Origin: Rhodosorus marinus CCMP1338
Lineage: Eukaryota > Plantae > Rhodophyta
NCBI GenBank assembly: GCA_029953675.1
Contig: JAMWBK010000006.1
Coordinates: forward strand, 1-64,000
DNA length: 64,000 bases
Direction of reading: 5' to 3'
Every line of letters starts with the position of its first letter. The first letter of the stretch is position 1. Of the stretch, positions 15,043 to 38,971 are shown piece by piece. The position numbers were made by a program, and so were the translations under genes. The notes under the pieces were generated by a model. The model was not told where the DNA came from. It did not search any database and saw only the letters and a list, made by a program, of their open reading frames with translations.

Positions 15043-15087
15043 AACCCCAGACTAACGTCAACCCCAGACCCCAGACTAACGTAACCC
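15043..15087. repeat. Short telomere-repeat tract (variant unit, 7-bp CCCCAGA duplication, canonical unit) at the A1 5' junction
   Basis: Sequence reads aaccccagactaacgtc aaccccaga ccccagactaacgtaaccc. Confidence 0.92.
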
Positions 15088-15570: not shown

Positions 15571-15663
15571 AGGCAGCTGCCCAGTAAAGTTTACGGTTAC
15601 GTTAGTCTGGGGTTAGACGTAGTGTTGCGCTGCAGTAGGCAGCTGCCCACTAAAGCTTACGGT
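15571..15663 (+). mobile_element. 93-bp insertion: two minimal family A 3'-end fragments separated by one telomere unit, GGT duplicated
   Basis: Absent from the paralogous site at 31761-31779 (cttctggggttgcggcacc). The fragments match the A2 3' UTR at 25586-25640. Confidence 0.92.
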
Positions 15664-17229: not shown

Positions 17230-20200
17230 ATGGCATCTCATGCTAACAATCTGAGAGCCTTTTCTGTTCCACGGAATGTACCGCTTGATGACAAGAAGGA
17301 CCCAGCGGACTTGTATATCGTGCATGACTCACCAGCCGATGATCCTGAAAAGATCTCGGAGGAGCTCGTTCTCAATGATACGACGGTGATCTCTGGTCAC
17401 GCAGAGTGGAGGAAGGTTTGGGAATTTGACAGTTGCATCAAAAATGGTTCTTCCGTGAACACCTCGAACTCAGGAGGACATTCGAACCTGGCGGTGAACG
17501 TTAATTCCGGCGGAGTTGCACGAATAGCAAGCACAGTGGTGAGAAGCTTTTTGAGGTTGAATTGTGACTGGGAGAGCGGAAAATATTGCGAACCGTGGGA
17601 AAAGAGGGTAATTCACTGACACCGTCGTTTCTCCTTGCGGTCGCCAATCGTGCAAGTGCAGTCTGAATTGAGCAAGAGGAGACCACGTGGTTTACGCTTT
17701 GTTTTGAAAGAACGGGACGACACTACGTTCTCTGAGCAATTAGCCTTTCCTCTGCAAAAGCCGAGCGTCAACATTGCGTTCGAGGAGTTTCTCCTCAGGC
17801 TTGCTCGAGGTACAGATTGCACTGGCGAAATGAAGTCCAAGCCTTCGGACGCTTGAATTTGGTTAGGTAATGCTCTTCAAAGCTTCTTCGTTAATCGTCC
17901 AATTTGCCTGTGTTCCCTCTTCTGTGGCAGGTCCATGTAAGGCCGTTTCAAAAGATGTTCCATTGGGGCCGGCCATATCCAGATCCGTAGGGAAGACCTT
18001 AGAAATGATGATGGAAAAGAACATACCGCCGCAGGCGGCTGTCTGGTTTCTTAAGGTGGCCATACTGAATGAATTGCCCAAAAAGACGAGGTTGAGATCT
18101 CACAAGAGGACTTGGGGAATCCCCCTCTTCAACGACCGGAGCTCTAAGCTACCCATCCTTTGTTTCTCATATCATGCCAGACCTGACAAACCGCCGCCGT
18201 TTGCGAAATGGCTCTGGTTTAAGCTGGCATCGGAGCACTTCCGGGCCCAGCTAGAGTCATACCGCGCTCTGAGCGTATCACCGCAAACGTCCGCATCAAA
18301 GTCTAACCAGTGGGAGTACTTTCTGAGCATTTTGCGCTTCCAGGCTGATGAAGGTAAGGACTCCGTTGCTAAAAAAAGTTGCTTTTACTACGATCTCATT
18401 TGCAAATTATTCTGCATGGAGTAGAGGGACGGTGACGTCCTCATCTTGCTTTCTGAACTTCGGTTCTGCAATAGGCCTCCTCGATGAGTTGACCCTAGTG
18501 GGCCGGCTTCTGTTCGTAGAGCTTCGAAAGGAACTCCAGACTGACTATGGGGAAGACGAACGCCCTAGTTGTGCATTAGTTTTTCAGAAGCAACTTCTTG
18601 ATATGCTTCTCGGTGCGATGCAGGAATTCGAACCTGAAATTTTGGCGTCCCGGGAATCTACGGTGGCCCTCAATCAACTTTTGAAAACAGCAATGTCTCC
18701 CACTTCGGCTCGTTTCATCCCTTTCCGAAAACGCTTGTTACAGGTCTCCAGAACCACTAACAAACGTCTTCTCGAAGCAGATTGCCTAACAAACTCGCAG
18801 GTATGCCAAAACAGAGAATCGAGATGGTCGGACTGTATCTTATTTTGCATCGTCGAGGAGTGATTCCCTGGTGTCACAAATGTGTGCTTTCCGACCTCTT
18901 ACCTTTTGTTCTTTCCTCCAAAGTTGTTGCTAGGAGACGATCAGAATCCAGGAACACCTAGATCTCGTGGACGGAATAGAGGAATGGTTTACGACCGTGA
19001 TGCTTTTCACAAGAAGATGCTGCTCCTTGGCTGCCTAACGAAAATGGCTTGGACTGGCAACTTTTCCGAAGCTGTTGAGCTCTGCCAATCTGCTTTCAAC
19101 ACTACTACTGCTGCCGTGCGCTTTCTTGTTAAGTGGACCCTCTGTGGTACAACATCCACATGCCCTCTCGCCGGGCTAACGTACGTACTGAATCGCAACT
19201 ACCCGAAAGACCGAGAGTCCTGGTTTTCGAGAATTCTTCGTTCCTGGAGGAGCTACTACGTTGAGAGTTTTAACAACCTCGTCCACGAATATCCCTTCCT
19301 GGCTGGTATTCTGACATTTGCCTCCGTATCTTGGACACAGGGCTGGCTCTGTGATTAGACTATTGGAAAAGGCTAAGCGAACGAGACGTCAACGGGCACA
19401 AGGTAGATTCATGTTCCAGAGACCAATTACTTCTGAAGTAGAAGTATGCCTGTCAAAGGGGTTGGCGGAATGTGACGCCGCAGTAGAATTTCTCCTGCAC
19501 TTGAGCAGCGTTGAATGCATTTCAATTAGTAACTATTTGAAGTACATCAGAGCGGGCCTTGCGAAGGCGCCAAAGTTACATGGAATTGGAGAGGACCTGG
19601 TGAGGCGATTTCCGGAGACTATGGATCGCAACGCAACGCTTCGAAGGCAAATACTCAAGAGCTTAGGGGTTGATAACATGGAGGTGGGTGGGGGAAGGAA
19701 GAGTGTTTCTGGGAGTCCTCTATGCTTCAATTCATAGGATCGAGATCCGATTCGCAACGTGCACGCTGAGCAAGAGTCTTCTGTCCTGATGTGTAGGCAA
19801 CTGTGACCTACGATCCAAGCGTCATCGAGCGGGTGCTTTCAAATGATCTAGTTTCTGCGAGGGCCGCGGGGAAGGAGCTGAGGAAGAGACATGGCCTTTC
19901 ATCGAGACTGACCCATTGTGACATCGCTGTCAAGGTATAGAAGTAATTGTGAACAGCCCTGGTTGGAACAGATTTTCCCACCAAACCCGAACAGTCTCTG
20001 AAGATCATGATTGCTGCTCATCATTTGCGGAACACTTGCAGTGCGGAGAGGATGTGCGCGTTTCCGTCTTGGTGTCCTTTCTTCTGGAGGCGGGAGCCTA
20101 CCGTACAGCTTCATCGTTTCTTGTGGACATGCTGAAACACGTTGAAGAACGCGGCGACGCTATAGATAAAGCTGATATCATTAGTTCTCTCTCCGGCATG

Positions 20201-21931
20201 GGCCTACTCTTCAGTGCAAGAGGAGATCTTGATTTGGTCATGGACCTTGCAATGAACTGGTCAAAAAGTGAACCCCAGGCTGTGCAGAGGTAATGCATCG
20301 TCTAGGAACCACATCAAATATGCTCCTTACGACAATCTCCACTATCGTTGTTTCCTTGTGCTGATTGTTCACATTCTGTCACGGACAGACTTTTGGGTGC
20401 ACTCGCCATCTCGTTCAAGGACACGTGAGCATCCTGGAAAAACTACGTTCGAAACGGTATTCTACGAGGTTTGTCGTCCTCCATGGCTCGCGCGTTACGA
20501 GGTGAACATGTCAACATAAGCTCGTCCGCGGTATTAGAGCAGTACCTTGATGCGGGCATAGACATCTCTAGCGCAATCCAAGAACTTGGCGATTCGCGAA
20601 GAACTCTTGAGGAATTTATTATACCGCTTGCCAAGGTAGGTGCAGAGATTGCAATGGAGAGAGCTGATTTCCACGTTCCCTCATTTGTTTGAATGGAAAC
20701 TACTGGTTCTAACTGAGTGGCTGTGACCGACTGGAACGCGTCCCAATGGACTAGCTCCGAAAGTCTGTGTGCGTTCCTAGCGAGATTCTTGCGTTCTTTG
20801 CAAGCGGATGCTCTCCCTCGACTGCGCTCGAACTACTGAACGTTATCATGCAGTATGGTCTCGAAGCCGCGGAAAAAGTTGTACAGCATCCGTTCCTACG
20901 AAGTGCGGTTCTATCCGCAGGTCTTCCAGCCGCCCTATCGCAGCACGCACGTCCCGGAGGAAATCCTGAAGCTATTCATCAGAAACCAGAGGAATCCCAG
21001 CAGGCAACTATCAGCTGTCGACGTGGTTAAAAACGCGAACATATTCAACGGCAACCTCTTTGCAATGTGGCTGCAGCTCGAACTGCAGAGAACAAGTTTG
21101 ACGACTTCGGAGGTAATGCGAGACAACTGGCACACGTGGAAGCGTTGTACTGACACGGTTTTCTGCGTTGCAGGTGGACGCTCTGGCTGCAGAAATCATG
21201 GCGCTTCTCGTAGAAGACAAGAGCATAGAGCCTTTGATTTACGACGTCCTGATCAAACCCGAGTCCTTGCGACTACGTGAAAGATTCTTGTCCATCCTGT
21301 TGACAAAGTTCAGCTCTGGATTTGAAGGCTTAATGGTCTCATCATCGGTACGCAGCCGCAAAATGACGTCGACATTTTTCAATGGCGATGTCAGTGAGCG
21401 CTAGCGGATGGCATTGGTGATTTTCTTGCTCAACCGAAACTCCTAAATTCTGACTATGGCACCCAGGAGACTTTGAACCGGTCAACGGAAAGGCTCGCTG
21501 AAGTAGACTACATATGTTTCAAGTTGCTGAAATATTTGAGTTTTCATTCAGAAGTACACGTTGACTTTGAGCTTGTACAGGAGGACATGATAAAACAGTT
21601 GAAGCAGATCAAGGAGACCCTGGGGAACGTCTTGCCGGAGAAGCTTATGCACCACAAGTATGTTGGCAAGGCAGTGTTGAGGCGGATCGAACTCCTTCGA
21701 GGGGCTGGGTTCGATGGCCTCGTGGCGAACTCCACGGAACTCTTGCTACAGACGTTGGAGGTGGTTGTTCCGGCACTGGAGGAGTCTGAAGTTGAAGACA
21801 TTCTCAGCGCAATCCAGGGATCGGAAAATCTGACGACGGAGGGAAAGGAACGTGATGAGACGGGATTGAAAAGAAGGGTACGTTCTGTCATGAAGGTTGT
21901 GAATTTTGTTCAAACAACATGTACTTCGTAA
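17230..21931 (+). pseudogene. MED12: MED12 (Mediator kinase-module subunit) pseudogene, distal copy
   Basis: Paralog of 33348-38052. It has a nonsense change (TGA at 20426-20428 vs TGC), a 4-bp insertion near 20948 and a 1-bp deletion near 21420. Confidence 0.75.
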
Positions 21932-22770
21932 CCGCAGAGAGAACGCTATTGAGCGAGAGCCTACGATACTGCTCGGCGGACCAGTATCCTCGTTATTCTA
22001 TTGACAAATGGCTTCTTTTTCGTCGCCGGCCGTGGCTCTTAATGTAATTGCTAATCATCTTTGTCCCAGGTTGTCACTTCGAATGTACATTTTTGGCTAT
22101 CCGCCAGGCAGAGGTTGATTCTTTGCTCTTCTTTTGCCGTGGCACGGGGAATGAACGGTGCCTACCGTCGAAGTATTGTCGCCTTTGCACCTTCCGAGGA
22201 GGCCCCAGCCAAACGGCGTTTATTGGACAATTGGAATCTGCTAGAAGGCCAGGGCCTGGATGCAACCATGAGCACGCCAACGTTCGGAATCCAGATAAAA
22301 GGGGACTCAAAGCCAGTGCGCTTCTTGAAGAGGTATTCCTCATCGTATGCCTCGCTTTCTAAATAAGCACGGTGTGGAAATAGGAAAATAAGAGCACTTG
22401 CGACCCGGACGGCTAAACTACTATCAGAGTGACCACGTACCTGTCCAGGGATTTGTTGATGTTGCGTCCTCGAGTTAAATTGGTCCGGAGTTAGGTTCAG
22501 ATACTGCTGGTCGTGCGCTGGTGCCCGATGGAGAAAGCCAAACTGACCCGGGGTTGCCCTTCGAGAAGAGGTCCCAAGTTTCTGTTTGACGGCTGAAGAC
22601 TTATCATGAAGCTGATTATATACATATACGGAACTGGGCCTTAGAGGACCAGCAAAACGTTTGACAGTGGTGATCGTGCCGTGTGCAAAGGATACTGAGC
22701 ATTTTGTCTATACAGTCGAATTTTACGGAGATTGACTAGGATCGTGATCGCCGACATTGAAAATCTGCCT

Positions 22771-25640
22771 TTCAGATGCAGCTCGAAGCCTACAGGCCAC
22801 CGAAATGGCACCTTTTACCGCGGCTACGTGGAGACAACTACAAGCGCTCTTTCCCAACCCGGCAGAAGGTGACATACCAGACGAGATTGCACACGCCCTG
22901 CAATCTTTGCTCGCTCTGAATACCGAAACACTAAAGCGGCGGTGGGATTCAAGAAAAACTGCCGACGAGGGCCTCATGTCGATCGTGGCACGTCTTCCTC
23001 AGGGCAAGAGCCCAGGTCCTAGCGGTATCCGAGCGGAACACCTCCAAGGTGCAACTCAACAGACGCAAGTGGCGTTGATTCGTGTATTGCGACAACTGGC
23101 GACCGCTCCTGAGAAATTTTCCCCGGCTCTGACCCGCGCCCTTCGCAGTAGTCGACTCCTGCCGTTCGCGAAGCCTAAGAAGGGTTCAGTGCCGCAGGAA
23201 CATCCCGGAGTTCGCCCTATCGGAGTACCAGAAGTTTTGCGCAAGGTAGCAACGCAATGGACTCTTCACGCGGTTATGGACAGGGTGCGTGAGCTGCTGG
23301 TGCCCTTACAACTGGGTATTGGAGTAAGTGGCGGGTGCGAACGCTCACTTCACTTGATCCAGGCCCATTTGTCATGCGAACCCGATTCGGTGGTCCTTCG
23401 GCTAGACCTAGAGAATGCCTTTAATCGCATCGACCGACGCCTTGCCAAGCAACTGGTGGACGAACACTTGCCGGAGCTTGCACCAGTGTATCGACTTGGC
23501 TATGGAAGCGACAACGCGGACTCACCGACGCTCTGTGGCTGGCGATCTTCCCCGGGACAGAACGAAACCGACACCTCTCGCCTGACTCTCCAAGCAACTA
23601 CAGGAGTCCAACAGGGAGATCCACTGGGGCCGGTGCTACATGCACTATCCCTGGCGCCCTTTCTAAGAGCGTTGCGAGCCAAGTTCCCCAACGAAACGAT
23701 TGTTGCTATCCACGACGATATCACGATTGTCGGGCCGCTACAAGCCTTGAAGGCATCCCGGGCATGGGGAAAAACTGTGCTCCCCTCTCTTGGAGCACGC
23801 CTGCAACTCGGCAAGTGCACTGTGTACGGGCGAACACTGACTACCACGCGAGTGGTCAATCATGAGATTCCTGGAGTGCAAGTGACCAGAGACGGAGTCA
23901 CCATCCACTCGATACCGATAGGCAGCCGAGAATATATCGAACAGGAGTGCCGGGGGCTGCAAAATAAGCATGAGAAACTCTTTGAGCAAATTGCCAAGCT
24001 CCCACAACCGGAGCTTACGACGCAAATTGCCCTCTTCAGGTTCTGTGCAGAAAGGCGACTAGACTATGTGCTACGATGCCTCGCATACGAGTTTGGAAGA
24101 AATCTGGCACGCGAGGCCGACGTGATGACCAGATATCATCTGGAAATTCTATTCGGAGGCCTCGCTACGACAGCTGTAGAGGACGATGAGTACGCAGAGC
24201 TGATCTCGGACCAAATCGCTCTGCCCTGCCGCTGGGGAGGTTTGGGTTTCGCTACTCGAAAGCGCGTCCAACCCATCGCGTTTTACTCGTCATGGAGAAA
24301 CACCTTCCGGAACAATGAAGATGAATGGCCATACCTGACTGAACTGGACTGGACTTTACTAGCATAGGCTGAAGCGCTACGCAAGGCGTGAAGATGAACC
24401 AATAACTAGGGAGGGAAGCATGCAACCCCAGGCGCCGATGGCGCGCCTCGGAAAGCATGTCACTGAACTAGAGCGGGAGGTTACGGCAGAACGCTCACCA
24501 GACACATACGAGCCGACGGAGCAACGATGGTCGACTGCACAGCTGGCAGAACAGATCTGTGCATCGTCGCGAGCAATACAACGGAGGCTCGGACCAGAAG
24601 CCCCGCCGCGGATCTTGGCACTGACAACCCTGCAACAACCGCGAGAAACATCTCTTCGAAGCGCCCCGGGCGAGACTGCAGCTTGGAATAATGGTTCAAT
24701 ACAACAAACCCTCTCTCGAGAGGCACACCATTGTGCATTCCAAAAGCTGGTCACCAACCCACGAATCTCCCCTGAAAACCGAGCTCGAATACGGTCTGCC
24801 GCGGGATCCGAGTCGGGAGTCTGGCTGCGTGAAATACCAACGCTGACACCGAAAAAATTGAGTGCGGTTGAGATGCAGGTAAACGTTCGACAACTGCTGG
24901 GTCTGCCAATTCCGGGATTGCGCACCACCGAGAAGTGCACTAGTTGCCGGAGTAAACACGGAAGGACTGGGGTACAACGGTTTCATCACTGCCCAACATC
25001 AACTGGACTGTGGCAACGTCGGCATGACGAAATCTGCAGAGAGCTGACACGGTGGCTAAGGCGATGGAACTTCATGGACGTAGAGCAAGAACCCGAGGGG
25101 TACTTCGAGAACTACGGACTGCGACCTGATATCGTTGCTAGGCATCCGAGGACCAAACAAAGGTATGCGCTGGATGTGACGGTGGTGTCACCATTACAGG
25201 GAAAATATTTGCGGCTGAGCCAAGATGATAGCGGATACGCGGCGAGAGCTGCGGAGAAGTGGAAAATCGCTGACTACAAGGAAGCGATGGTGATCGAGAA
25301 ACCGGATGACAAGCTCATCCCGATAGCGATAGAGACGTTTGGGCGTACGGGGCAAATGGCACAAGAGTTCCTCCGCGACAGCTGCAAACACCTGCTGCAC
25401 AGGAGTGAGGAGCTGAGAGACGTGAGATCCCAGATAAACCGGCAACTATGGCGAGGTAACGCGGAGATAGCATTAGGCGCTTTGCGCGTGGACCAGCTGG
25501 AGAACCCGCTGGTGCCTGTTTTTTCTTTTGAACGTAGCATGAGACCCCGGTAGCGGGGTTCCAGAAAGTTTTTCCCTAGATAGGATTAGACGTAGTGTTG
25601 CGCTGCAGTAGGCAGCTGCCCAGTAAAGCTTACGGTTACG
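22771..25640 (+). mobile_element. 5'-truncated family A element (A2): RT-CCHC-RLE with one frameshift, complete 3' end
   Basis: SPGPSG, VRPIGVPEVLRK, LDLENAFNRIDR, GVQQGDPLGP, IHDD, CTSC...HHC, RHDE...RPD...LDVTV. Frameshift at ~24362 and stop at 25553. The 3' UTR ends GGCAGCTGCCCAGTAAAGCTTACGGTTACG. Confidence 0.93.
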
Positions 25641-25649
25641 GTAACGGGT

Positions 25650-26200
25650 TTAGGGGGCGAGGTGGTTGCCTACGGCCTGTCGCGGGAGATCATGCGGAGA
25701 TGGTGCAGAATTCGTAGTTGCGGCTCCACTTTCCCACATACCCGGTTTCCGGGACAACTCCGTAAGGCGTCCGGTGACGCCTTGCAGCTCTTGCGAGCTG
25801 TTGACCCGCGAGTACAGTTGAAAAACTGCTTTGTAGAAGCCTGTAACTTCGGACGCAGCGATGCCCAGGTCCTGGTAGCATCTGTCGAAGCTCCGCAGTT
25901 GATGCAAGAATGTGGCTGCCGGGTCGGTTGCGGCTGCAGACTCGGTCCATCTTCTTGCTTGAACATCGCCTGCTTGTGGTTCCGTCGGTGTCTCCTGCAC
26001 GTCGCCATCAGACTGGTGCTGGTGCCTTTGCAAACTTCCCGGGTGCCCGAGGGGTCCGGGCCCTGAACGACAAGAGGTTCGGGGTACGGCCCGCGTACCT
26101 CCCTCACAATCATCTTCGGACTCTCTTACGAACTTTCCTTTTGTCTTCCTTACGAACTTTTCCTTTTGTCTTCCCCAAACGCCTACGACCTAGATTAGCA
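25650..26200 (-). mobile_element. Probable 5' end / ORF1 N-terminal fragment of a family A-like element
   Basis: ATG at 26113 (VREVRGPYPEPLVV, resembling A1 VSLRADGPEPLPV), followed by a helical ORF after one frameshift. A 24-25-bp tandem duplication lies upstream (26135-26183). Similarity is weak. Confidence 0.45.
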
Positions 26201-26228
26201 ATAGAAGTAGTCGTTAGTCTAGGGTTAA

Positions 26229-26904
26229 GAAAAAAGAGGGACCAGTGGATTCTCCAACGGTCCACGCGCAAAGCGCCTAGGGCTATCTCGGCATTACCTC
26301 GCCAAAGTTGCCTGTTGATCTGCTATCTTACATCGCTCAGCTCCTCGCTCCTGTGCAATAGGTGTTTGCAGCTGTCCCGCAGAAACTCCTGTGCCATCTG
26401 TCCCGTCCGCCCAAATGTTTCTACCGCAATTGGGATGAACTTATCATCCGGGTGTTCTATCGTCATCGCCTCCTTGTAGTGCGCTTTCTTCCAGCTCTCT
26501 GCACATCTTGCTGCATATCCGCTCTCCGCCTCACTACATTCAGATACTTCCCTTTGAGAGGAGCCACAACCGTCACGTCCAGTGCATACCGTTGAAATGT
26601 CCTCGGATGCGCAGCAATGATGTCTGGCCTTAGCCCGCAGTTTTCAAAGTACTTCTCCGGCTCCTGCTCGATGTCCAGAAAGTTCCACCTGTTCAACCAC
26701 CTTGCGATCTCCGTGCATATCTCGTCATGCATACGTTGCCACAGGCCAGTAAGCGTTTGAGGAATTCACTGTTGGATCCCCAGTGAATACCTCAAACGCT
26801 TGTCGGTGGCACTCTCGAGAGAGAGTTTTTTGTATTGGACCGTCAAACGTTTGGTTTCCTTCTGCGTCCTCAGCTGTGCCTTGGGCTGACTCCTCAATCA
26901 ACTG
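26229..26904 (-). mobile_element. 5'-truncated family A 3' fragment (A3), RLE domain
   Basis: HDEICTEIARWLNRWNFLDIEQEPEKYFENCGLRPDIIAAHPRTFQRYALDVTVV closely parallels A2. The 5' junction abuts a telomere seed at 26905-26921. Confidence 0.9.
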
Positions 26905-26921
26905 CCAGACTAACGTACCCC

Positions 26922-27433
26922 TCGGCAAGCATGCTACTCGAATATCGCCACAGAGAGACACTTAAACGCTGCAAAAGTTCCAAGTACTCAACGGGATGCT
27001 CAGTAAAACATAACCGAAACCACTCCAAACCCGACTTCTCCACGTCACTAGAGCTTCCCACAATGAAAGGCTGGAACTGGTGGGAGCGACCCTCAGCGCG
27101 AGGCAGACTGCCCATACTCTCAGCACACCGTCGTTCCTTCACGCGGGGAAGGGCCGAAGCCGCTGCTCCCCGGCGGCGGGCGGCAGCCGTGAGATGGGCG
27201 CTTGCCACAGGGCATGTGATCGCGAGGTCAACATATGCGCAGCGTCTGGCGGCAGCATCGGAGACGAGGAAATCTGCAATACAGCGGGGCGGTGCCCTAT
27301 CCGAGACTGATCTGGGGTAGTTCCGATAACTGCGCACTTTTTTCTGCCATAAAATGCGGTTCGACTGACCTCTTACCGATGTTAGGTGTGTTTTACGATC
27401 ATGAAGATGAGCAGTTGCATTTCGCAGAAACCA
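26922..27433 (-). mobile_element. Family B RLE fragment (B5), truncated at both ends
   Basis: APPRCIADFLVSDAAARRCAYVDLAITCPV...EHPVEYLELLQRLSVSLWRY. Bounded by telomere seeds on both sides. Confidence 0.88.
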
Positions 27434-27452
27434 CAGACTAACGCAACCCCAG

Positions 27453-28300
27453 GGCTGCCGGAGTCATCTCCGTGTCATGGCCTTTGCCTTCCGCTGTCAC
27501 GCGTGCGCGTTTTTGCTGGGGAGGCTCCGGAAGGTTGTGCGGGAGCTCGGCGTGTGGATTTTCCTCTTCGGCATCCTCCTGTGGTAGTTGAGACGTAGCG
27601 CTGGAGTCACCCGAAGCGTCGAGGGTCCCGCGGGCTACCTGTGAGTCTCCGTGAGTCTCCGTGAGGAGTCGAGGCTTCTGGGGCTGCGTTTGTAGCGGCT
27701 GCAGTCGCAAGGGGTTCCACGCTCTCCCCGGCTACCGCTGGTGGATGTTGTAGGGCTCTTAACGCTGGTAGACGCTCTTCCAGTGTTTCATGGATGGCTG
27801 CGAGAGTAGAGAACGACAGATTCCTCTTTCCGAGCCTCGCGCGAATCCTGATGATCTGTTGTATGGCCCGGTGCAGCGTCTGGGCTGGGATATCCTCTTG
27901 GGCGATCCTTTGCCTTTAGTTGTAGCCCAACAGGTTGCCAGCCTCCAGTCCCTGTCCTGTGTGGAAAATCGCTTGCCGGTCAGGATGTCTCGGTGTGAAC
28001 GATCCAAAGATCCCTGTTCTGAAAACGCCTCTGGCGATAGCGCTCTGCACAATCGGGATTGCATACGGATGGCAGAGCAGGCTTGCGTGTGATGAGATGA
28101 AGTCCGCATGCGCGATGTGAGAGGCTGGGATTCCCCGCGCGGCGCATAGGACGGTGGTGAAGTCCGAAGGTGCCACATTATCCTGCCTTTGGGGGCGGAC
28201 GTTTCGAAGGGCGGCAAGGATCGGTGTGGTCTCTGGTCCCCAGATAGCTCCCTCCACCGTAGCGTGCAGCTGTCGCAGCGCTGCCTGCTGAGTCTGCCAG
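27453..28300 (-). mobile_element. Family A-like ORF1 fragment (C-terminal two thirds) with a nonsense codon
   Basis: ADFISSHASLLCHPYAIPIVQSAIARGVF matches A1 LDYFDHHVHVIAHHTAFQLLRDATNAGAF. GESVEPLATAAA matches GEESAEPLAATT, and there is an NLS-like PPQQKRARV. Bounded by telomere seeds. Confidence 0.72.
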
Positions 28301-28311
28301 CCCGAGACTAA

Positions 28312-28363
28312 CGTAAGCCGTAAAGGCTATTGGGGCAGCTGCCCAATAAAGGATACAGTTACG
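28312..28363. repeat. Imperfect inverted repeat made of two oppositely oriented family A 3' termini sharing the palindrome GGGCAGCTGCCC
   Basis: The plus strand reads gcagctgcccAATAAAggatacagttacg. The minus strand reads gcagctgccccaatagcctttacggcttacg-ttagtct. Confidence 0.75.
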
Positions 28364-28640
28364 ATAGGCTCGGGCAGCAGGATAGGGAGAGAGAGGGTTC
28401 TCGTGGCGGGATATATCTCAACGCTCTGTCTTCGTAACTGAACTGATGTGTGCGTTGAATCAGCTGATTTTAATCAGTCTCTTGGCTGACAGATGAATCT
28501 GATGTGTTAGTCCTTTTCCAGACTATATACTGAAGGAACGGAAGGCTCGTAACTTTCAAACGTCCCTCCCCCGTGGTCACTCTAGCCAGGGCTAGAGTGA
28601 CGCAGTTCATTCGCTTCTGAGAACTGATGATTTGGCCCAC

Positions 28641-29454
28641 TCAATACAGACCACATTTCATGAGGCACTCCTTCTGAATCTCCCGGGACACTGCCGCAGC
28701 CCGAAGCTTGTCGACTTTGTTGAGGGGTACATCGAAGATGACGCTCAAGAGATTGTCAGGAAAGCTCAGAATGCTATCCGGATAGTTAAGGGCTCCTGGG
28801 TCCTCGCTACTCAAACCCGCGAAGAACTGCGCCTCCTCGCAGCTGTCATTGATCTGGAAGTGCGGGAGTCCCTGAGGAAAGATAGTACCCTGTCCTGACT
28901 TCAACTTGTTGACAATCGTCCGAGTCTGGAACTCTACAAGTGTTACAATTACCAGCGCAATGACACGATTTGGCTTCAGTACTAAACAAGCATGCCCTGA
29001 TAAGCAACATTGACGGCTATAACCTACCCTCAGTGAAGCCAACCTTAAAATTTTTGCCCTTGATCAAATATAAGAACTCCGTTGCTCGCGGGTGGGAGTG
29101 CGGGTTATTCACTGTAAATTGAAGGAGAATTGGGGAGCAATTGTAAGCAAGGTTTCTCACAAATGCGACAGGAAAAAAATGAACTTGGTTGTGGGTTTTG
29201 CTACCTCCGCAAGGCTCAAGCGTGACGAGCGCAGCACCAATCCCAAGATTGCGTAGTGCTGGGAACGTGTTCAGAAAAGCTGGAATGAGAGTTGTTCCGA
29301 TTCCGTTGCTTAGCATTGGGCCCTTTCTGAAGTCGAAGACGAAATCCTTCCTGTCAAACTCCTGCCTCTCCTCCAGAGCTGTTTGTGTCGCGGCGAACAC
29401 TGCTAGCACAGATCCAAAAAGGATTAAAACACTGCACGGGCATGTTACTTTCAT
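28641..29454 (-). CDS. Secreted germin/spherulin-like cupin protein (2 introns inferred)
   Basis: Signal-peptide-like N-terminus. Germin box PHSHPRATEFLYLIKG and motif 2 GQGTIFPQGLPHFQIN. Confidence 0.9.
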
Positions 29455-29459
29455 TATAA

Positions 29460-31730
29460 ACTTCTGAGGTACGCGAATCGGGAAGCTCTTCTCTGCTCTG
29501 CTATCTTGTTCGTCTCAGCCATCAGACGATCCTTCTCTGGATTGCGTCCTAGGCCGCTTTTATAGTCAGCTTGGAGGGCGCTTGATGTGTACACTCGATA
29601 GGATAGCTTGTCTAGAATGTCAATGGAGAAATAGGCCCTCTTACCCACCATGTTGTTACAGCCCCTCTGGATGTGTGGGAATGCTGTCCACTTCGGAAGG
29701 ATTGGGTGGCTACTGATGGGAACTAGTTCCCCACTAGTTCGGATGGCGGTCGGTTCAATATCAACTTCCCGTCGGACAAGCACGTCGCGATTTGGATTGA
29801 GGACCTATTCTATGAAGAAATTTCTGAATACAACAGTTATCACTGAGCAGCTTCTTAAATGGTGTAGTGTCTTGCCAGATTACGAGATTACCGCAGAGCT
29901 GAACGGTGAGCAAAGTAGAAAAGCATCGAAGTCACTCAATTTTGACGGAGGGCTCGCCCAAAAAGAATACATAAAGTTAAGGAACCGCACCCCTTCTCAG
30001 CTTCTAAGCTCAGTCGCCGTACTTTTCGCACAGTGTAGCTTCACGTGACAATTGTAGCGGACAAGAAATGTACATCGGACTACTACCGCAGCATTCGACA
30101 AGGCAGCCGACTTGGATACCACATATCAAATGATTGGTTGCCGCGAAAAAGTAGAGGGGGGCTTCTGAGATAATGTTGCTCGTGAAATAACATATCCCAA
30201 TCTCTAAGCTGGTCGACATTGGAATTACGTTGTTTGAACTGCTCACGAGCATTTGGCAAACGGGCGCATTCTTTGAACTCGAACGTGTCGCAGCTCAGGC
30301 CATAACGCAAGAAAGTGCCCAGCAAGATCGGCATGGTGAAGCCAATCTTCGATCTGGATAAAGTATTCCATCCATTCAATTCCCCAATTTCAAGATCAAT
30401 CAAATGGCATTGATTCGCAGGCGACTGAAGAAATTCAGTGCGCTTGTTCAGTTCCTTGCTTACTTATGGCAAAGCCTAAAAATATCCTCAGGAAACCACA
30501 AAACAAAAAGCGAAAATCGAGTCTGTTTTTTTGGCACGACAACAAGCAGCTTTCGCCCCAATCTGATCAAGTAGGAGGTGATCTCTCGCTTCACGATTGT
30601 AAGTTTTTCAGAAATGTTTTGCGGCCGCAGCTTTATCTCCAATCGTCTGAGTGAATCGACACCGAAAATGAAAAGAAACTCTCTACTAGAGTGTAGACGT
30701 TGATTGACTCGCAGTCACTAAGCAAGTTTTGCACGGTGAGCAACAGTCAGCCATTCTGAGCCAATGGGAGGAGTTTTCTTCCCTTTTTTCAATTTTTCAA
30801 TTGAAATCGCAACTGCGCTGGCTTCCTTTGACGGATGCGTTGCACGCCAAGGCGAAAGCTAATACTGGTCGCTGTTTTGGTTTGGGAAGTGAATACGAAT
30901 GTCCGCTACATACAGCCTTTCTAGAAAACGAAGTTGACTGTAGGTCGGCCAGATCAGGGCAGAATTGATTGCCGGGCAGCATTAAGTCAGTTTTTGGCGA
31001 CATATTCCCTATGATCAACCTAATATGTACTTTCAGCGCGCCGCCGCCGAGCTAAATGCCCGTCGCCCACTGCTACAGGTGCAAGAACGTCGAAACGAAG
31101 CGTTCTTGAACTCACAGCCAATCCCTCATCTCCTGGTGCTTTGCAACAAGAGTATCTCTACACACACGAACTCGCACGAGCATAGGAAAGCGCTCTTGAC
31201 TGCCTAATTGCAGAAGGTAGATCCTCTCTAGGACAGGTCCTGCCTTTAGAAAGCAAAGAATGATGCGAACATCGTTTAGGCCGGGAGCTGCAGTATACAG
31301 ATGGCTTCCAGATAATTGAATTCAGATTACATGAAAACCCGAATGATTGGGCTTTGACTTTTATTTGTTAGGAATATTGGACTGGCTCAAATCGTCGTGC
31401 AGGTTCATCGAATCCAGTTTGAAGCTGCCACGAATCCATCGAGTCTCCGTCTCCCGTATATTCGGGCAAAAAATCGAGGTGAGTGATCTTCGCAAAGGCC
31501 TTCTTCAGGCTCCATGCAAGGACACTGCTGGCGTCATCTGGTTGTGTGGGTGCTTTGCGAATCAACTTGGTGCTTGGCACACTCCGAATCCTTTCTTAGT
31601 TTATCCCTTTCGTGGAGCACAGCCATCCTTGTCCTTCCGAGGGTCGTTCCTTGCGTGGAGTGTATTGGTGTAGGTAGCCCTCTAGTAAAGTTCTCGTCTC
31701 CGGCCAAGGGGTTCCACTTCGTTATGTAAT
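29460..31730 (-). pseudogene. Possible decayed coding relic(s), unidentified
   Basis: A series of short protein-like minus-strand ORFs (29454-29783, 30083-30403, 30460-30642, 31368-31580) separated by stops; no recognisable motif. Confidence 0.3.
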
Positions 31731-32100
31731 AAGTTATACTGGACGTCTTGATTCTACGTTCTTCTGGGGTTGCGGCACCTTCAACACAAGTGAGCGAAGC
31801 ACGAGCGACGCTCAGCCGGTCCCGGTGGAAAGGGAATGCAATGCCTCCACCCAGGCTCGCCGAATTGACGAAGGGAGCTATGAGATCGTTCCTCTAATAG
31901 AACGTGGCACACATCCCATTAGGGTTTTTTTAGCGCGTAGGTAGATTCCTTATTCGCTCTTGATGGGCTCCACTAGGGAGCTCTTCGGTAGAGCATTCAC
32001 GGTTACAGTTAGGTTATTTATATTGGACGTCGCATCAGTACCAGATCATCGGATCGGAACCAGTTCAATCCGTCGTAAGTAGGCTCTTGGGTAAATTCAA

Positions 32101-32900
32101 ATGGACATGATTCATGGTCCATGGATCACTGCTATACGCATATATGACCATGTGCTTGAATCTTGGGGAACTATGTCGAACCCAGCTGAGGCGAAAGCAA
32201 GTAGCTGCGCTGTTGGCTGTGAGCGCATTTGGCGCTACCGTTCAGTTGGAAATCCCCTGTGGAATAATCAACAGGGGATTTTCAACTTCCGGTGCAGCAG
32301 ACGTGCAACTCAAAAGGCCAAGGTCGACCGCTTGGGACAGGAAGAACCCACCCTAGCCCATATCACCCAAAATCGGAGGTTCCCACCAACCGTTGTCGAA
32401 CCCGCATCCCGCGGAAATGGAACACAATGGGCTACCGCACAGCAAGAGTTCCGCAGGTTGCCGAGCTTGGGCAACCCACGCTCTCACCCAGGGACTTCGC
32501 GCTCAAAACTTCAGCAAAGTGCTCGACCGTAGGTGTCCGAAGGTTTAACCGAGGACGGATCGGAAACGGTTGAGCTCTATTTCGACCCACAATCTCGTCC
32601 CCTGTACGTGTCTAGAATAAGCATGCCAGCACTGAGTCCTGACTACTCCGGGGTTACGTTCCCTTTTGGCTTCCACAATGCGAACCTGTGCAACGTCAAG
32701 AGCGGGGAGTTCTTGGACTCCAGCAGAATCTCAAGTTTGTGCCAATGCTGGGCTTACGCTAATCTGTGGTATTTACCTTCATGAGAATTTCTTTTCGAAG
32801 ACGAGAGGCAGAGACCACGGGACAAAATAGTCATAGATGAGATACAGCAACCAACAGAATCCCCCACTCACTGCGGTTCGAATACAGAACCCATCTAGTC
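32101..32900 (+). pseudogene. Unidentified interrupted ORF (paralog at ~15997-16770)
   Basis: Consecutive protein-like frames 32101-32532 and 32533-32784 that are broken in both copies. Confidence 0.3.
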
Positions 32901-33347
32901 TCACTTGAAGATGGCGACTGGAGTTTATACCGCTGCTTTGCTGAACTACGTAAGCGTGAGCTTGGGGGCCAGGATGGTGCTCCTGTCACTTAAGCAACCC
33001 CTCGTGTCCCCTGAGGTTAGCCTTTTTCCTGGAATGTGCGTCAACGTGAACTCTGGATTGGAGCGCTCAAATTATTAAGCCGAAAACCTCGCCAGCGGTC
33101 GCTGGCAACCTCAAAACTCAGCTCAAGCAGAGACTCAACCCCTCTAACCGGTCCGTCTAGTCCTGGTTGCAGTGTTCAAACTCCCGAACCGAGCCTGTCC
33201 TGGAAGGTCAGACAGCCCAAATCTGGACTTTTGTCTCCGAGAAAAGAGGAGTACAAGACATTACCTGAAGTGGAAAACTGGGGTTACGGCTATTCCATTA
33301 GGGAGAGTAAGATGTGAATGCAGGGCTACGAGTTTTAGGAGGCTACT

Positions 33348-36300
33348 ATGGCATCTCATGCTAAAAAGCTGAGAGCGTTTTCTGTTCCACGGAATGTACC
33401 GCTTGATGACAAGAAGGACCCAGCGGACTTGTATATCGTGCAAGACTCACCAGCCGATGATCCTGAAAAGATTTCGGAGGAGCTCGTTCTCAATGATACG
33501 ACGGTGATCTCTGGTCACGCAGAGTGGAGGAAGGTTTGGGAATTTGACAGTTGCATCAAAAATGGTTCTTCTGTGAACACCTCGAACTCAGGAGGACATT
33601 CGAACCCGCCGGTGAACATTGATTCCGGCGGGGTTGCACGAATAGCAAATAGAGTGGTGAGAAGATTTTTGAGGTTGAATTGTAACGAGGAGAGCGGAAG
33701 ATATTGCAAACCGTGGGAAAAGAGGGTAATTCACTGACACCATCGTTTCTCCTTGTGGTCGCCACTCGTGCAAATGCAGTCTGAATTGAGCAAGAGGAGA
33801 CCACGTGGTTTACGCTTTGTTTTGAAAGAACGGGACGACACGACCTTCTCTGAGCAATTAGCTTTTCCTCTGCAAAAGCCCAGCGTCAACATTGCGTTCG
33901 AGGAGTTTCTCCTCAGGCTTGCTCGAGGTACAGATTGCACTGGCGAAATGAAATCCAAGCCTTCGGACGCTTGAATTTGGTTAGGCAATGCTCTTCAAAG
34001 CTTCTTCGTTAATTGTCCAATTTGCCTGTGTTCCCTATTCCGTGCCAGGTCCATGTAAGGCCGTTTCAAAAGATGTTCCATTGGGGCCGGCCATATCCAG
34101 ATCCGTAGGGAAGACCTTAGAAATGATGATGGAAAAGAACATACCTCCGCAGGCGGCTGTCTGGTTTCTTAAGGTGGCCATACTGAATGAGTTGCCCAAA
34201 AAGACGAGGTTGAGATCTCACAAGAGGACTTGGGGAACCGCCCTCTTCAACGACCGGAGCTCTAAGCTACCCATCCTTTGTTTCTCATATCATGCCAGAC
34301 CTGACAAACCGCTTCCGTCCGCGAAATGGCTCTGGTTTAAGCTGGCATCGGAGCACTTCCGGGCCCAGCTAGAGTCGTACCGCGCTCTGAGCGTATCACC
34401 GCAAACGTCCGCATCAAAGTCTAACCAGTGGGAGTACTTTCTGAGCATTTTGCGCTTCCAGGCTGATGAAGGTAAGGCCTCCGTTGCTAAGAAAAGTTGC
34501 TTTTGCTACGCTCTCGTTGCAAATTATTCTGCGTGGAGTAGAGGGACGGTGACGTCCTCATCTTGATTTCTGAACTTCCCTTCTGCAATAGGCCTCCTCG
34601 ATGAGTCGAGCCTAGTGGGCCGGCTTCTGTTCGCAGAGCTTCGAAAGGAACTTCAGACTGACTATGGAGAAGACGAACGCCCTAGTTGCCCATTAGTTTT
34701 TCAGAAGCAACTTCTTGATATGCTTCTCGGTGCGATTCAGGAATTCGAGCCTGAAATTTTGGCGTCCCGCGAATCTACGGTGGCCCTCAATCAACTTTTG
34801 AAAACAGCAATGTCTCCCACTTCGGCTCGTTTCATGCCTTTCCGAAAACGCTTGTTGCAGGTCTCCAGAACCACTAACAAACGTCTTCTCGAAGTAGATT
34901 GTGTACCAAACTCGCAGGTATGCCAAAACAGAGAATCGAGATGGTCGGACTATATCTTATTTTGCATCGTCGAGGAGTGATTCCCTGGTGTCACAAATGT
35001 GCGCTTTCCGAACGCTTACCTTTTGTTCTTTCCTCCAAAGTTGTTGCTAGGAGACGATCAGAATCCAGGAACACCTAGATCTCGCGGAAGGAATAGAGGA
35101 ATGGTTTACGACCGTGATGCTTTTCACAAGAAGATGCTGCTCCTTGGCTGCCTAACGAAAATGGCTTGGACTGGCAACTTTTCCGAAGCTGTTGAGCTCT
35201 GCCAATCAGCTTTCAACACTACTACTGCTGCCGTGCGCTTTCTTGTTAAGTGGACCCTCTGTGGTACAACATCCACATGCCCTCTCGCCGGACTGACGTA
35301 CGTACTGAATCGCAACTACCCGAAAGACCGAGTCCTTCTGGTTTTCGAGAATTCTTCCGTTCCTGGAGGAGCTACTACGTTGAGAATATTAACAACCTCG
35401 TCCACGAACATGCCTTTCTGGCTAGTATGCTGACCTTTGCCTCCGTATCTTGGATACAGGGCTGGCTCTGTGATTAGACTATTGGAAAAGGCAAAGCGAA
35501 CGAGACCTCAACGGGCACAAGGTAGATTCATGTTCCAGAGACCAATTACTTCTGAAGTAGAAGTATGCCTGTCGAAGGGGTTGGCGGAATGTGACGCCGC
35601 AGTAGAATTTCTCCTGCACTTGAGCAGCGTTGGATGCTTTTCAATTAGTAACTATTTGAAGTACATCAGAGCAGGCCTTGCGAAGGCGCCAAAGTTACAT
35701 GGAATTGGAGAGGACCTGGTGAGGCGATTTCCGGAGACTATGGATCGCAACGCAACGCTTCTTCGAAGGCAAATACTCAAGAGCTTAGGGGTTGACAACA
35801 TGGAGGTGGGTGGGGAGAGGAAGCCTGTTTCTGGGAGTCCTTTATGCTTCAAATCATAGGCTCGAGATCCGATTCGCAACGTGCACGCTGAGCAAGAGTC
35901 TTCTGCCCTGATGCGTAGGCAACTGTGACCTTCGATCCAAGCGTCATCGAGCGGGTGCTTTCAAACGATCTAGTTTCTGCGAGGGCCGCGGGGAAGGAGC
36001 TGAGGAAGGGACATGGCCTTTCATCGAGACTGACCCATTGTGACATCGCTGTCAAGGTACGGAGTTAATTGTCAACAGCCCTGGTTGGAACAGATTTTCC
36101 CACCAAACCCGAACCGTCTCTGAAGATCATGATTGCTGCTCATCATTTGCGGAACACTTGCAGTGCGGAGAGGATGTGCGCGTTTCCGTCTTGGTGTCCT
36201 TTCTTCTGGAGGCGGGAGCCTACCGCACAGCTTCTTCGTTTCTTGTGGACATGCTGAAACACGTTGAAGAACGCGGCGACGCTAGGGATAAAGCTGATAT

Positions 36301-38052
36301 CATTAGTTCACTCTCCGGTATGGGCCTTCTCTTCAGTGCAAGAGGAGATCTTGATTTGGTCATGGACCTTGCAATGAACTGGTCAAAAAGTGAACCCCAG
36401 GCTGTGCAGAGGTAATGCCTCGTCTAGGAACCACGTCAAATATACTCCTGACGACAATCTCAACTCTCGTTGTTTCCTTGTGCTGATTGTTCACATTCTG
36501 TCGCGGACAGACTTTTGGGTGCGCTCGCCATCTCGTTCAAGGACACGTGCCCATCCTGGAAAAACTACATTCGAAACGGTATTCTACGAGGTTTGTCGTC
36601 CTCCATGGCTCGCGCGTTACGAGGTGAAAATGTCAACATAAGCTCATCCGCGGTATTAGAGCAGTACCTTGATGCGGGCATAGACATCTCTAGCGCAATC
36701 CAAGAACTTGGCGATTCGCGAAGAACTCTTGAGGAATTCATTATACCGCTTGTCAAGGTAGGTGCAGAGCTTGCAATAGAGAGAGAGAGAGCTGATTTCC
36801 ACATTCCCTCATTTTTTTGAATGGAAACTACTGGTTCTAACTGAGTGGCTGTGACTGGAACGCCTCCCAATGGACTAGCTCCGAAAGTCTGTGTGCGTTC
36901 CTAGCGAGATTCTTGCGTTCTTTGCAAGCGGATGCTCTCCCTCGACTGCGCTCGAACTACTGAACGTTATCATACAGTATGGTCTCGAAGCTGCGGAAAA
37001 AGTTGTACAGCATCCGTTCCTACGAAGTGCGGTTCTATCCGCAGGTCTTCCAGCCGCCCTATCGCAGCACGTCCCGGAGGAAATCCTGAAGCTATTCATC
37101 AGAAACCAGAGGAATCCCAGCAGGCAACTATCAGCTGTCGACGTGGTTAAAAACGCGAACATGTTGAACGGCAACCTCTTTGCAATGTGGCTGCAGCTCG
37201 AACTGAAGAGAACAAGTTTGACGACTTCGGAGGTAATGCGAAACAACTGGCACACGTGGAAGCGTTGTACTGACACGGTTTTCTGCGTTGCAGGTGGACG
37301 CTCTGGCTGCAGAAATCATGGCGCTTCTCGTAGAAGACAAGAGCATAGAGCCTTTGATTTACGACGTCCTGATCAAACCCGAGTCCTTGCGACTACGTGA
37401 AAGATTCTTGTCCATCCTGTTGACAAAGTTCAGCTCTGGATTTGAGGGCTTAATGGTCTCATCATCGGTACGCAGCCGCAAAATGACCTCCACATTTTTC
37501 AATGGCGATGTCAGTGAGCGCTAGCGGATGGCATTGGTGGATGTTCTCGCTGAACCGAAACTACTAAATTCTGGCCATGGCACCCAGGAGACTTCGAACA
37601 GGTCAACGGAAAGGCTCGTTGAAGTAGACACCATATGTTTCAATTTGCTGAAATATTTGAGTTTTCAATCAGACGTACACGTTGACTTTGAGCTTGTACA
37701 GGAGGACATGATAAAACAGTTGAAGCAGATCAAGGAGACCCTGGGGAACGTCTTGCCGGAGAAGCTTATGCACCACAAGTATGTTGGCAAGGCAGTGTTG
37801 AGGCGGATCGAACTCCTTGGAGGGGCTGGGTTCGATGGCCTCGTGGCGAACTCCACGGAACTCTTGCTACAGACGTTGGAGGTGGTTGTTCCGGCACTGG
37901 AGGAGTCTGAAGTTGAAGACATTCTCAGCGCAATCCAGGGATCGGAAAATCTGACGACGGAGGGAAAGGAACGTGATGAGAAGGGATTGAAAAGAAGGGT
38001 ATGTTCTTTCACGAAGGTCGTGAATTTTGTTCGAACAACATGTACTTCGTAG
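33348..38052 (+). CDS. MED12: Mediator complex subunit MED12-like, multi-exon, probably the functional copy
   Basis: Med12 N-terminal domain signature DVPLGPAISRSVGKTLEMMMEKNIPPQAAVWFLKVAILNE, an upstream PLDDKKDPADLY...PEKISEELV block, and QWEYFLSILRFQADE-GLLDE. The stops I checked fall in plausible GT-AG introns, and the indels relative to the distal copy that I checked are in frame. Full exon structure not verified. Confidence 0.75.
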
Positions 38053-38971
38053 CCGCAGAGAGGACGCTACTGAGCGAGAGCCTACGATACTGCTCGGCGG
38101 ACCAGTATCCTCGTTATTCTATTGACAAATGGCTTCTTTTCGTCGCCGGCCGTGTATCTTAATGTAATCGCTAATCATCTTTGTACCAGGTTGTCACTTC
38201 GAATGTACATTTTTGGCTATCCGCCAGGCAGAGGTTGATTCTTTGCTCTTCTTTTGCCGTGGCACGGGGAATGAACGGTGCCTACCGTCGAAGTATTGTC
38301 GCCTTTGCACCTTCCGAGGAGGCCCCAGCCAAACGGCGTTTATTGGACAATTGGAATCTGCTGGAAGGCCAGGGCCTGGATGCAACCATGAGCACGGCAA
38401 CGTTCGGAATCCAGATAAAGGGGGACTCAAAGCCAGTGCGCTTCTTGAAGAGGTATTCCTCATCGTATGCCTCGCTTTCTAAATAAGCATGGTGTGGAAA
38501 TAGGAAAATAAGAGCACTTGCGACCCGGACGGTTAAACTACTATCAGAGTGACCACCTGTCCAGGGGTTGGTTGATGTTGCGTCCTGGAGTTAAACTGGT
38601 CTGGAATTCGGTTCAGATACTGGCCGGTGCGCTGCTGCCCGATGGAGAAAGTCAAACTGACCCGGGGTTGGCTCTTTGAGAAGACGTCCCCAGTTTCTGT
38701 TGGACGCCTGAAAACTTATCATGAAACCGTTTATATACATATACGGAACTGGGACTTAAGCGCGCCGAGAACCAGCAAAACGTTTGACAGTGGTGATCGT
38801 GCCGTGTGCAAAGGATACTGAGCACTTTGTCTATACAGTCGAATTTCGCGGAGATTGACTAGGATCGTGATCGCCGACATAGAAAATCTGCCTGCTTCTG
38901 AGTTGTGATAAACGACCGCCACGCTTGCCGTTATGAAGTCAAACAATGTTATAAATGATTTTATTTATCGC

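Follow-up and report, generated by a model that had tools for sequence, protein, structure and literature searches.

A region at positions 26228-28378 of the 64,000-nucleotide (nt) stretch of Rhodosorus marinus CCMP1338 contig JAMWBK010000006.1 analysed here (positions 1 to 64,000, hereafter the window) is probably a head-to-tail array of truncated retrotransposons lacking long terminal repeats (non-LTR elements), which derive from several related families and are specific for a 16-nt telomere-like repeat, while loss of the chromosome end followed by re-capping with new repeats would explain the truncation of their 3′ ends. The array belongs to a known kind, that of the telomere-repeat-specific retrotransposons (MoTeR/FoTeR, SART/TRAS), and such elements are apparently undescribed in red algae. 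The pattern of fragments separated by short repeat segments (here called seeds) seems to owe its origin chiefly to an enzyme that cleaves the repeat, and not to elements rebuilding the chromosome end. In this respect our explanation departs from an earlier one based on the letters of the sequence (the sequence-only reading), according to which the chromosome end suffered a series of breaks, each of them healed by a short bout of telomerase synthesis (about one unit) and followed by extension with a 5′-truncated element, so that telomerase and retroelements would maintain the end together.

The target repeat is a 16-nt unit whose G strand reads GTCTGGGGTTACGTTA (on the + strand of the window TAACGTAACCCCAGAC), and the array at 9847-10223, in which a single unit near 9985 is without one base, served as the reference. 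All three seeds (S1, S2 and S3) were found at the places where the sequence-only reading had put them, each matching the 16-nt unit of this array with 2 mismatches in its best register, and their orientation is the same in 3/3. Their length, said to be under 1.2 units, is so for S1 (one unit) and S3 (about 1.1 units) but not for S2, which holds 1.5 units. In the window as a whole, the 9-mer AGACTAACG occurs 39 times with at most one mismatch, against 10.5 expected occurrences, and 0 of 100 shuffles reached 39; likewise, there are 15 segments of at least 12 nt that match the repeat with at most one mismatch, compared to 2.9 in shuffles. On the + strand, C-type units are found at 9846-15088 and 26904-28319, and G-type units at 15594-16545, 25633-26229, 31763-33289 and 42252.

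The pieces between the seeds are truncated non-LTR retrotransposon fragments with their sense on the minus strand throughout (Table 1). Their earlier assignment to the first open reading frame (ORF1) of an element, to a family B and to a family A was confirmed by protein and DNA matches to the R. marinus protein NDN08_004843, to element E3, to further copies in the window and to a second R. marinus chromosome end, here named L002 (contig JAMWBK010000007.1, 2186696-2207983 of 2212799). The ORF1 fragment, in which the minus frame is largely open, shares 69% protein identity with NDN08_004843 (P0075; residues 57-311 of 331) and 72% DNA identity with L002 10467-11297; its match to the ORF1 of element E2 is marginal (E 0.09), and its identity is settled by the match to NDN08_004843. 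The family B fragment is 80-83% identical to 7823-8225, 8690-9104, L002 17456-17863, 18037-18442 and 20862-21267, while the family A fragment is 76% identical to 24966-25527, its protein-level similarity reaching S3. Compared with these relatives, the ORF1, B and A fragments are all truncated at both ends. At the S2 cut in ORF1 the L002 copy reads on as ...GGCAGGC|GTCGAGGCTCC (GTCGAGG...), the relatives of B, namely u1, u2 and those in L002, go on with ...CCGAGG|CGCGCC... and reach a (AGTAAAGTCC)n tail after about 110 nt, and E3 reads through the position where fragment A meets the seed. Because the relatives of A, B and ORF1 read through the cuts, the seeds are junction sequences and not fixed internal parts of intact elements, just as the sequence-only reading needed them to be, and both cut points it named, ccctgggg|ttgcg and ccgagg|ggtacg, are present in the sequence.

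Other parts of the anatomy are less simple than had been described. Fragments and seeds do not strictly alternate, since an extra piece of about 100 nt at 27320-27430 joins B without a seed; this piece was recognised by tblastn with residues 299-335 of 352 of P0081 (54% identity, E 8.7e-8), and no DNA homologue of it was found in the window or the retrieved loci. The element 3′ terminus reported next to S1 is present, but its length is just about 33 nt (28317-28352), and an inverted copy (28334-28378) overlaps it. Its sequence corresponds to the conserved terminus GGCAGCTGCCCAGTAAAGCTTAC found at 15572, 15638, 25611 and L002 10320. The two inverted mini-termini with their seeds (28317-28378) carry a CTCGGG variant in both arms and look like a fold-back copy. 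Fragment A, described as a 3′ fragment, is E3-like, and its own 3′ end is cut and abuts a seed of opposite orientation at 26212-26229. Three other derivations of the junctions were considered and rejected: a nested insertion with B split by A, as the sequence after A is not the remainder of B; an origin of S3 from the CTGGGGTTGC motif that B itself has downstream, brought closer by a small deletion, which was ruled out on sequence; and an origin of S2 by insertion straight into a target-like site within the element, where L002 has GTCGAGGCT, which cannot supply an extra full unit.

In order to describe the geometry of insertion, 24 junctions from the window, the second chromosome end and transcripts were tabulated against the unit rotated to GGTTACGTTAGTCTGG. 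Intact termini (...A(A/G)TAAAGnnTAC) always abut GGTTACG, at phase 0 ±1, and the ends of the seeds fall within phases 15 to 6 in 12/12 scorable cases, i.e. 0-7 nt past GTCTGG. The sense strand of the element is the G strand in every identified case (the window, L002, L003, L005 and L011), and the lone junction with antisense after a seed is the tail-to-tail one at 26212-26229, for which an end-to-end fusion or a rare end-primed copy is possible. The start phases that do not correspond to the endonuclease junction are those of S2 (phase 12) and of a case in L011 (about phase 6), while the start of S3, after ...GAGG, coincides with the canonical nick phase. Taken together, the fixed polarity, the presence of an endonuclease and the fixed phases at both seed boundaries indicate that the elements inserted into duplex repeats. 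Insertion at one position of the repeat and in one orientation, a trait of telomere-repeat-specific elements, is thus found in them as well. The geometry fits a nick made by the endonuclease on the C strand, opposite GTCTGG^GGTTACG, and it rules out priming from the G-strand 3′ end of the chromosome, because such priming would put elements antisense after the seed, as they lie in HeT-A/TART and in MoTeR/FoTeR.

For these reasons the full cycle of breakage, healing and extension by an element appears quite unlikely. It would explain why the ORF1 and B fragments lose their 3′ parts at short microhomologies rich in G, with repeat units coming next, why such units cap unique DNA at 15089 and why the polarity at L002 is outward. 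However, it predicts antisense after the seed, whereas sense orientation is seen in every element that was identified; an endonuclease is encoded by the elements; and the fixed phase of seed ends also marks insertions at a non-terminal 13-nt seed. The intact terminus before S1 makes a break unnecessary there, and the 23-unit array demonstrates that many units can be synthesised in succession. Extension of a healed end by an element, and with it mixed end maintenance, is not supported, in view of a sense strand continuous with the G strand, of the endonuclease and of the fixed phases, and the idea of one brief telomerase episode per seed does not agree with S1, apparently a target remnant, or with the longer synthesis evident in that array.

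The elements themselves encode ORF1 and ORF2, the latter with a non-LTR reverse transcriptase (RT) and a C-terminal restriction-like endonuclease. The RT domain of E3 corresponds to Pfam RVT_1 (E 4.5e-9), with human LINE-1 ORF2p as the best PDB matches (E 1.6e-6), and the RT ORF at 22757-24367 shares 75-84% identity with proteins and transcripts of Rhodosorus marinus. The endonuclease core RH(D/N)..E..RPD..D was found in E2, E3 and L001 with the regular expression RHD/N.x19-33.E.x9-21.R/KPD.x12-14.D/E, and the top PDB match of a profile of this domain, a weak one, is to the endonuclease part of the R2 protein 9nl2 (residues 941-1035, E 0.068). The assignment to CRE is putative and combines the RepeatMasker label 'LINE/CRE' (PMC10250338) with the domain order and motifs; in the supplement of the R. 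marinus genome paper, RepeatMasker attributes 9.04% of the genome to long interspersed nuclear elements (LINEs) of the CRE/SLACS type, which are not discussed there (PMC10250338).

Table 1. Retroelement fragments, repeat units and related features of the window and of the second chromosome end
Feature	Position	Strand	Remarks
16-nt repeat array	9847-10223	-	23.6 units, 99% matches
Element E2	10224-15041	-	full-length; ORF1 of 476 amino acids, then RT and endonuclease; repeat units on both flanks
Irregular repeat units	15042-15088	-	2.8 units capping non-element DNA; precede 5′ end of E2
Filled site	15565-15662	+	mini-termini of 25 nt and 40 nt, together with a new 21-nt seed
Element E3	22769-25634	+	5′-truncated; intact 3′ terminus ...GGCAGCTGCCCAGTAAAGCTTAC|GGTTACGG
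Opposite-orientation seed	26212-26229	+	CGTTAGTCTAGGGTTAAG; abuts cut 3′ end of fragment A; tail-to-tail with plus-oriented block 22769-26211
Family A fragment	26228-26903	-	E3-like linker and endonuclease domain; 5′-truncated at S3, 3′-truncated about 107 nt before family 3′ end
Seed S3	26904-26921	-	GGGGTACGTTAGTCTGGC; one base missing
Family B (F/B family) fragment	26922-27335	-	C-terminal part of nuclease domain and part of 3′ untranslated region; without the last ~110 nt
Third-element ORF2 C-terminus piece	27320-27430	-	both ends truncated
Seed S2	27429-27452	-	CTGGGGTTGCGTTAGTCTGTGGTT; first base at repeat phase 12, not the endonuclease phase
ORF1 fragment	27453-28300	-	5′-truncated (~105 nt shorter than L002 copy), cut near ORF1 end; three in-frame stops
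Seed S1	28301-28319	-	GGCTTACGTTAGTCTCGGG; after intact terminus; canonical 3′ junction TAC|GGCTTACGTTAGTCTCGGG
Mini 3′ terminus, E3-type	28317-28352	-	...GGGCAGCTGCCCCAATAGCCTTTAC; innermost layer of array
Inverted mini-terminus copy with degenerate seed	28334-28378	+	seed TTACGATAGGCTCGGG; palindrome GGCAGCTGCC common to the minus-strand terminus
L002, in order	10240-10254; 10343-10362 (L002)		genes; one-unit seed (10240-10254); 90-nt E3-type terminus; one-unit seed (10343-10362); ORF1 and RT; block 95% identical to window 3619-8318

In regard to the mechanism that could produce such an array, we propose that, after the C-strand nick described above, the freed ...GTAACC-3′ end would anneal to the GG at which the element RNA ends (...A(A/G)TAAAGnnTACGG) and prime reverse transcription. 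Synthesis would often stop early, leaving 5′-truncated copies of which some are just 25-90 nt long, and the G strand would be cut 0-7 nt further on, generating a small target duplication. As a consequence of the nick and the staggered cut, a seed would consist of one unit plus the duplication, or about 16-23 nt; seeds between neighbouring insertions are 16-23 nt long, and this may be why nearly all of them are close to one unit in length. Longer interstitial tracts would be refilled by further insertions, or would collapse. Since the 3′ end of the element faces the chromosome end, loss of the distal end would remove the 3′ parts of the outermost element. New repeats would then join the break at a microhomology of a few bases, and the new tract could be hit again at its first complete target site.

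Under this proposal, S1 reads as an ordinary insertion junction, with a target remnant of one unit and a small target duplication. The notion of breakage and healing is retained for S2, and possibly for S3, in view of their 3′-truncated neighbours, the off-phase start of S2 and the capped DNA at 15089, but not for S1, which follows an intact terminus. Terminal loss followed by addition of a new telomere is the best explanation for S2 that the sequences offer, and possibly holds for S3, because unique DNA at 15089 is capped in the same manner. The latter position belongs to a direct segmental duplication of 7.1 kb (15661-22770 and 31768-38893, 94.5% identity), which in a wider definition spans 15090-22770 and 31290-38893 with 93-94.5% identity, copy 1 being cut at 15089 and capped by repeat units. 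There, copy 2 continues at 31290 with ...ACTGCAGCTCCCGG as unique DNA, and copy 1 reads ...ACTGCGC|GGGTTACG; the cap is in the correct orientation, and beyond it lie the full-length E2 and then the 23-unit array. The signature of de novo telomere addition, i.e. non-telomeric sequence that passes into repeats of the correct orientation where a homologue reads on, is thus found at 15089 in comparison with 31290, at S2 in comparison with L002, and at S3 in comparison with u1, u2 and L002. The other boundary of the duplication, 22768, is the 5′-truncated start of E3 with no seed between, and resembles the duplications at the boundaries of MoTeR relics.

Alternatively, the 3′-truncated junctions could have arisen without any chromosome break, either because reverse transcription was primed from within the element RNA, at a GG or GGGG, or through a later microhomology-mediated deletion that reached from inside an element into an adjacent repeat tract, although we regard such an origin as rather unlikely. 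S3 starts exactly at the canonical nick phase after ...GAGG, as if a ...CC-3′ primer had paired with an internal GG, and interstitial tracts do shrink or vary, as exemplified by the irregular units at 15042-15088. On the other hand, addition of repeats to a broken end is favoured because S2 and the L011 case start at phases which the endonuclease junction never uses. Furthermore, elements with a restriction-like endonuclease usually recognise their own 3′ end, as known from R2, which counts against internal priming.

A comparison of the two copies of the duplication is also informative about the behaviour of seeds. The empty paralogous site at 31763-31775 is a 13-nt seed, TCTGGGGTTGCGG, while the filled copy reads TCTTGG, the 25-nt terminus, GGTTACGTTAGTCTGGGGTTA, the 40-nt terminus and GGTTACGG, the insertion lying exactly at GG^GG. 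The filled site gained a full new unit that the 13-nt target could not supply. Seeds can thus be hit as targets even where no end is near, and strings of fragments and seeds can be deposited together. For this reason, and owing to transcripts that read through the junctions, to one junction without a seed and to blocks of both polarities, a reading of the array as a purely chronological stack, as in the sequence-only reading, is not supported.

Related to this, the whole string might not be a time series at all, and could have resulted from one or a few events involving read-through RNAs, template switching and/or segmental duplication or break-induced replication; we give this scenario a minor but not negligible chance. 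Transcripts L005/L006/L009 and L011 (JGI sample 3300016967), as well as L003, show the same fragment-seed grammar. The transcripts L005/L006/L009 and L011 carry whole seed-fragment-seed-fragment strings and run through terminus-seed-fragment junctions, so that arrays are transcribed across element boundaries, and L011 holds a 3′-truncated internal RT fragment of 122 nt with seeds on both sides. The two termini and the internal seed gained by the filled site, the seedless junction at 27320-27335, the 7.1-kb duplication and a 4.7-kb block shared at 95% with another chromosome end are in line with such events. However, this scenario merely shifts the origin of junctions with 3′ truncation and a seed to a donor locus, no second copy of the present string was found in the window or in the retrieved loci, and the ORF1 junction of L002, with its other truncation point, arose independently.

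This second chromosome end runs from ordinary genes into an element array pointing to the contig end, with the first seed directly on gene-region DNA (10240), a further instance of unique DNA capped by repeat units, about 22 kb from the contig end. A comparison with other chromosome ends had been suggested, and here the elements point outward with the same polarity, ORF1 being followed by RT toward the contig end, so that the element 3′ end is distal. The succession of terminus, one unit and ORF1 seen at S1 recurs at L002 10320-10362, with a 5′ truncation point that differs by about 105 nt, and because of this difference the junctions in L002 and in the window represent independent events. The shared block (window 3619-8318 on the + strand, L002 13290-17956) comprises several elements, and its orientation in the window is opposite to that of the minus-strand array.

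Several observations weigh against the proposed explanation. The 16-mer was not seen at a terminus, the L002 sequence stops 4.8 kb short of the contig end, and the telomere motif is not printed in the genome paper (PMC10250338). The window contains blocks of both polarities, and with at least 9.8 kb beyond the 23-unit array this makes 'outward' a local term and any chronological reading insecure. Internal-GG priming of B RNA explains S3 equally well as healing does, and the seedless junction at ~27320-27335, together with the read-through transcripts, implies that a single step can create or relocate a block of several fragments. Finally, the canonical CRE/SLACS CCHC spacing, C.x1-3.C.x7-8.H.x3-4.C before RHD/N, was not matched by regular expression in E2, E3 or L001, which instead have a Cys-x2-Cys...His...Cys cluster of non-canonical spacing 9 residues before RHD/N.

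The first of these points raises the question of whether the 16-mer is a telomere repeat or a satellite that the elements happen to target, in which case the seeds would say nothing about chromosome ends. We consider a satellite very improbable. The 16-mer has not been observed in a terminal position, at least 9.8 kb of the window lie on the distal side of the 23-unit array, and single units occur among ordinary genes, e.g. at 42252. However, the unit is strand-asymmetric with a G strand of the GGGG/TTA type, it caps truncated unique DNA in the correct orientation, it marks a boundary between genes and element array 22 kb from a contig end, and telomeres are reported on 12 contigs in the R. 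marinus genome paper, where the motif is not given (PMC10250338). Six contigs of assembly GCA_029953675.1 are described as telomere-to-telomere. Red-algal telomere sequences have been described as 'mostly missing or fragmentary' (PMC7046594), and the present data point to an unusual 16-nt telomere-type unit for Rhodophyta. A literature search with all rotations of the 16-mer on both strands returned chance primer matches only, and metagenome scans with a 20-nt repeat pattern and with the endonuclease profile gave no match. Nor was any paper found that connects Rhodosorus with retrotransposons, and exact-protein look-ups of P0002, of the E3 endonuclease ORF and of one gene of the window returned no record.

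It is also conceivable, if improbable, that element RNAs read into the first downstream unit, so that each insertion, even that of a 25-nt terminus, would deposit a fresh cleavable unit, and the elements, together with a telomerase whose 16-nt template would be unusually long, would jointly build and re-seed the ends. Such joint building would be an intermediate between telomerase-only telomeres and the retrotransposon telomeres of the Drosophila type, in a lineage whose telomeres are almost unstudied.

Among the known systems, the most extensive resemblance is with MoTeR1 and MoTeR2 of Magnaporthe oryzae and the FoTeRs of Fusarium oxysporum, which combine an RT with a C-terminal restriction-like endonuclease of the core RHD/N..E..(R/K)(P/A)D..D/E (PMC7367193, PMC12857005). 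Likewise, they insert into telomere repeats at a fixed position and in a fixed orientation and form head-to-tail arrays with short interstitial repeat tracts and many truncated copies, including truncated elements capped by a new telomere and internalised relics beside segmental duplications. In Magnaporthe, elements are truncated and a new telomere is added at seeds of 1-4 nt, and only short interstitial tracts are stable (PMC7367193). Their 5′ end is directed toward the chromosome terminus (PMC12857005), whereas in Rhodosorus the 3′ end is distal, and end loss accordingly trims 3′ ends here and 5′ ends in the fungi. Further differences are the target (a 16-nt unit compared to TTAGGG), a separate ORF1, the absence from the 5′ end of any clear tract of variant repeats, the spacing of the Cys and His residues, the very short mini-termini and the host, which is a red alga.

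According to the work of the Fujiwara laboratory, SART1 and TRAS1 of Bombyx mori reportedly nick telomeric repeats in a sequence-specific manner and use target-primed reverse transcription, while the host keeps telomerase-type repeats. SART1 has its sense on the G strand, like the Rhodosorus elements. SART/TRAS elements belong to the R1 clade and possess an N-terminal AP-type endonuclease and a poly(A) end, whereas the Rhodosorus elements carry a C-terminal restriction-like endonuclease and are without an A tail. HeT-A/TART/TAHRE of Drosophila and the endonuclease-deficient Penelope-like Athena elements are added to the chromosome 3′ end with their own 3′ end proximal, and they replace telomerase or use telomeric overhangs. 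They share with the present array the location at chromosome ends, the polar arrangement and the frequent truncation, but Rhodosorus differs in its opposite polarity, in the presence of an endonuclease and in the persistence of long perfect repeat arrays. Terminal addition leaves the antisense strand continuous with the G strand, whereas in Rhodosorus the sense strand follows the G-type seed. In trypanosomatids, CRE1/CRE2, SLACS and CZAR have the same order of RT and restriction-like endonuclease and the same core motif (PMC12857005), but they target spliced-leader genes instead of a telomere-like repeat, and the canonical CCHC spacing is theirs and not that of the Rhodosorus elements.

With these elements, a red alga joins the short list of organisms with telomere repeats parasitised by site-specific retrotransposons, which includes the silkworm, the rice-blast and Fusarium fungi, Cryptococcus and Giardia. 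The polarity is reversed with respect to the fungal elements with restriction-like endonucleases, so that erosion leaves layers truncated at the 3′ end and not at the 5′ end. Elements of this kind are a likely reason why CRE-labelled LINEs make up 9% of the R. marinus genome. No new way of maintaining chromosome ends is revealed.

Some additional observations concern individual elements and stretches. E2 is the sole full-length element in the window, and its ORF2 lies in three reading frames, yet it adjoins the most perfect array. ORF2 of E3 is interrupted at 24338-24465 by an antisense insert that corresponds to the final 128 nt of a family-B element; a duplication (ACTGAACTgGA), some 10-14 nt in length, flanks it, and the transcript-derived protein P0001 is without this insert. 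Family B, with its (AGTAAAGTCC)n tail, is also capable of inserting at non-telomeric sites. For 25640-26211 and 28379-31289, neither the window nor the retrieved loci yielded a homologue; the former stretch of 570 nt includes a 25-bp unit present twice, at 26125-26174. On the right side of the window, the ORFs encode ordinary eukaryotic domains (GTP_EFTU, DUF3684, VASt and CUE), and a 20-nt repeat match, TCGTTAGTCTGGGGTTACCT at 42252-42271, lies among these ordinary-looking genes, about 700 nt from an ORF for an EF-Tu-like GTPase.

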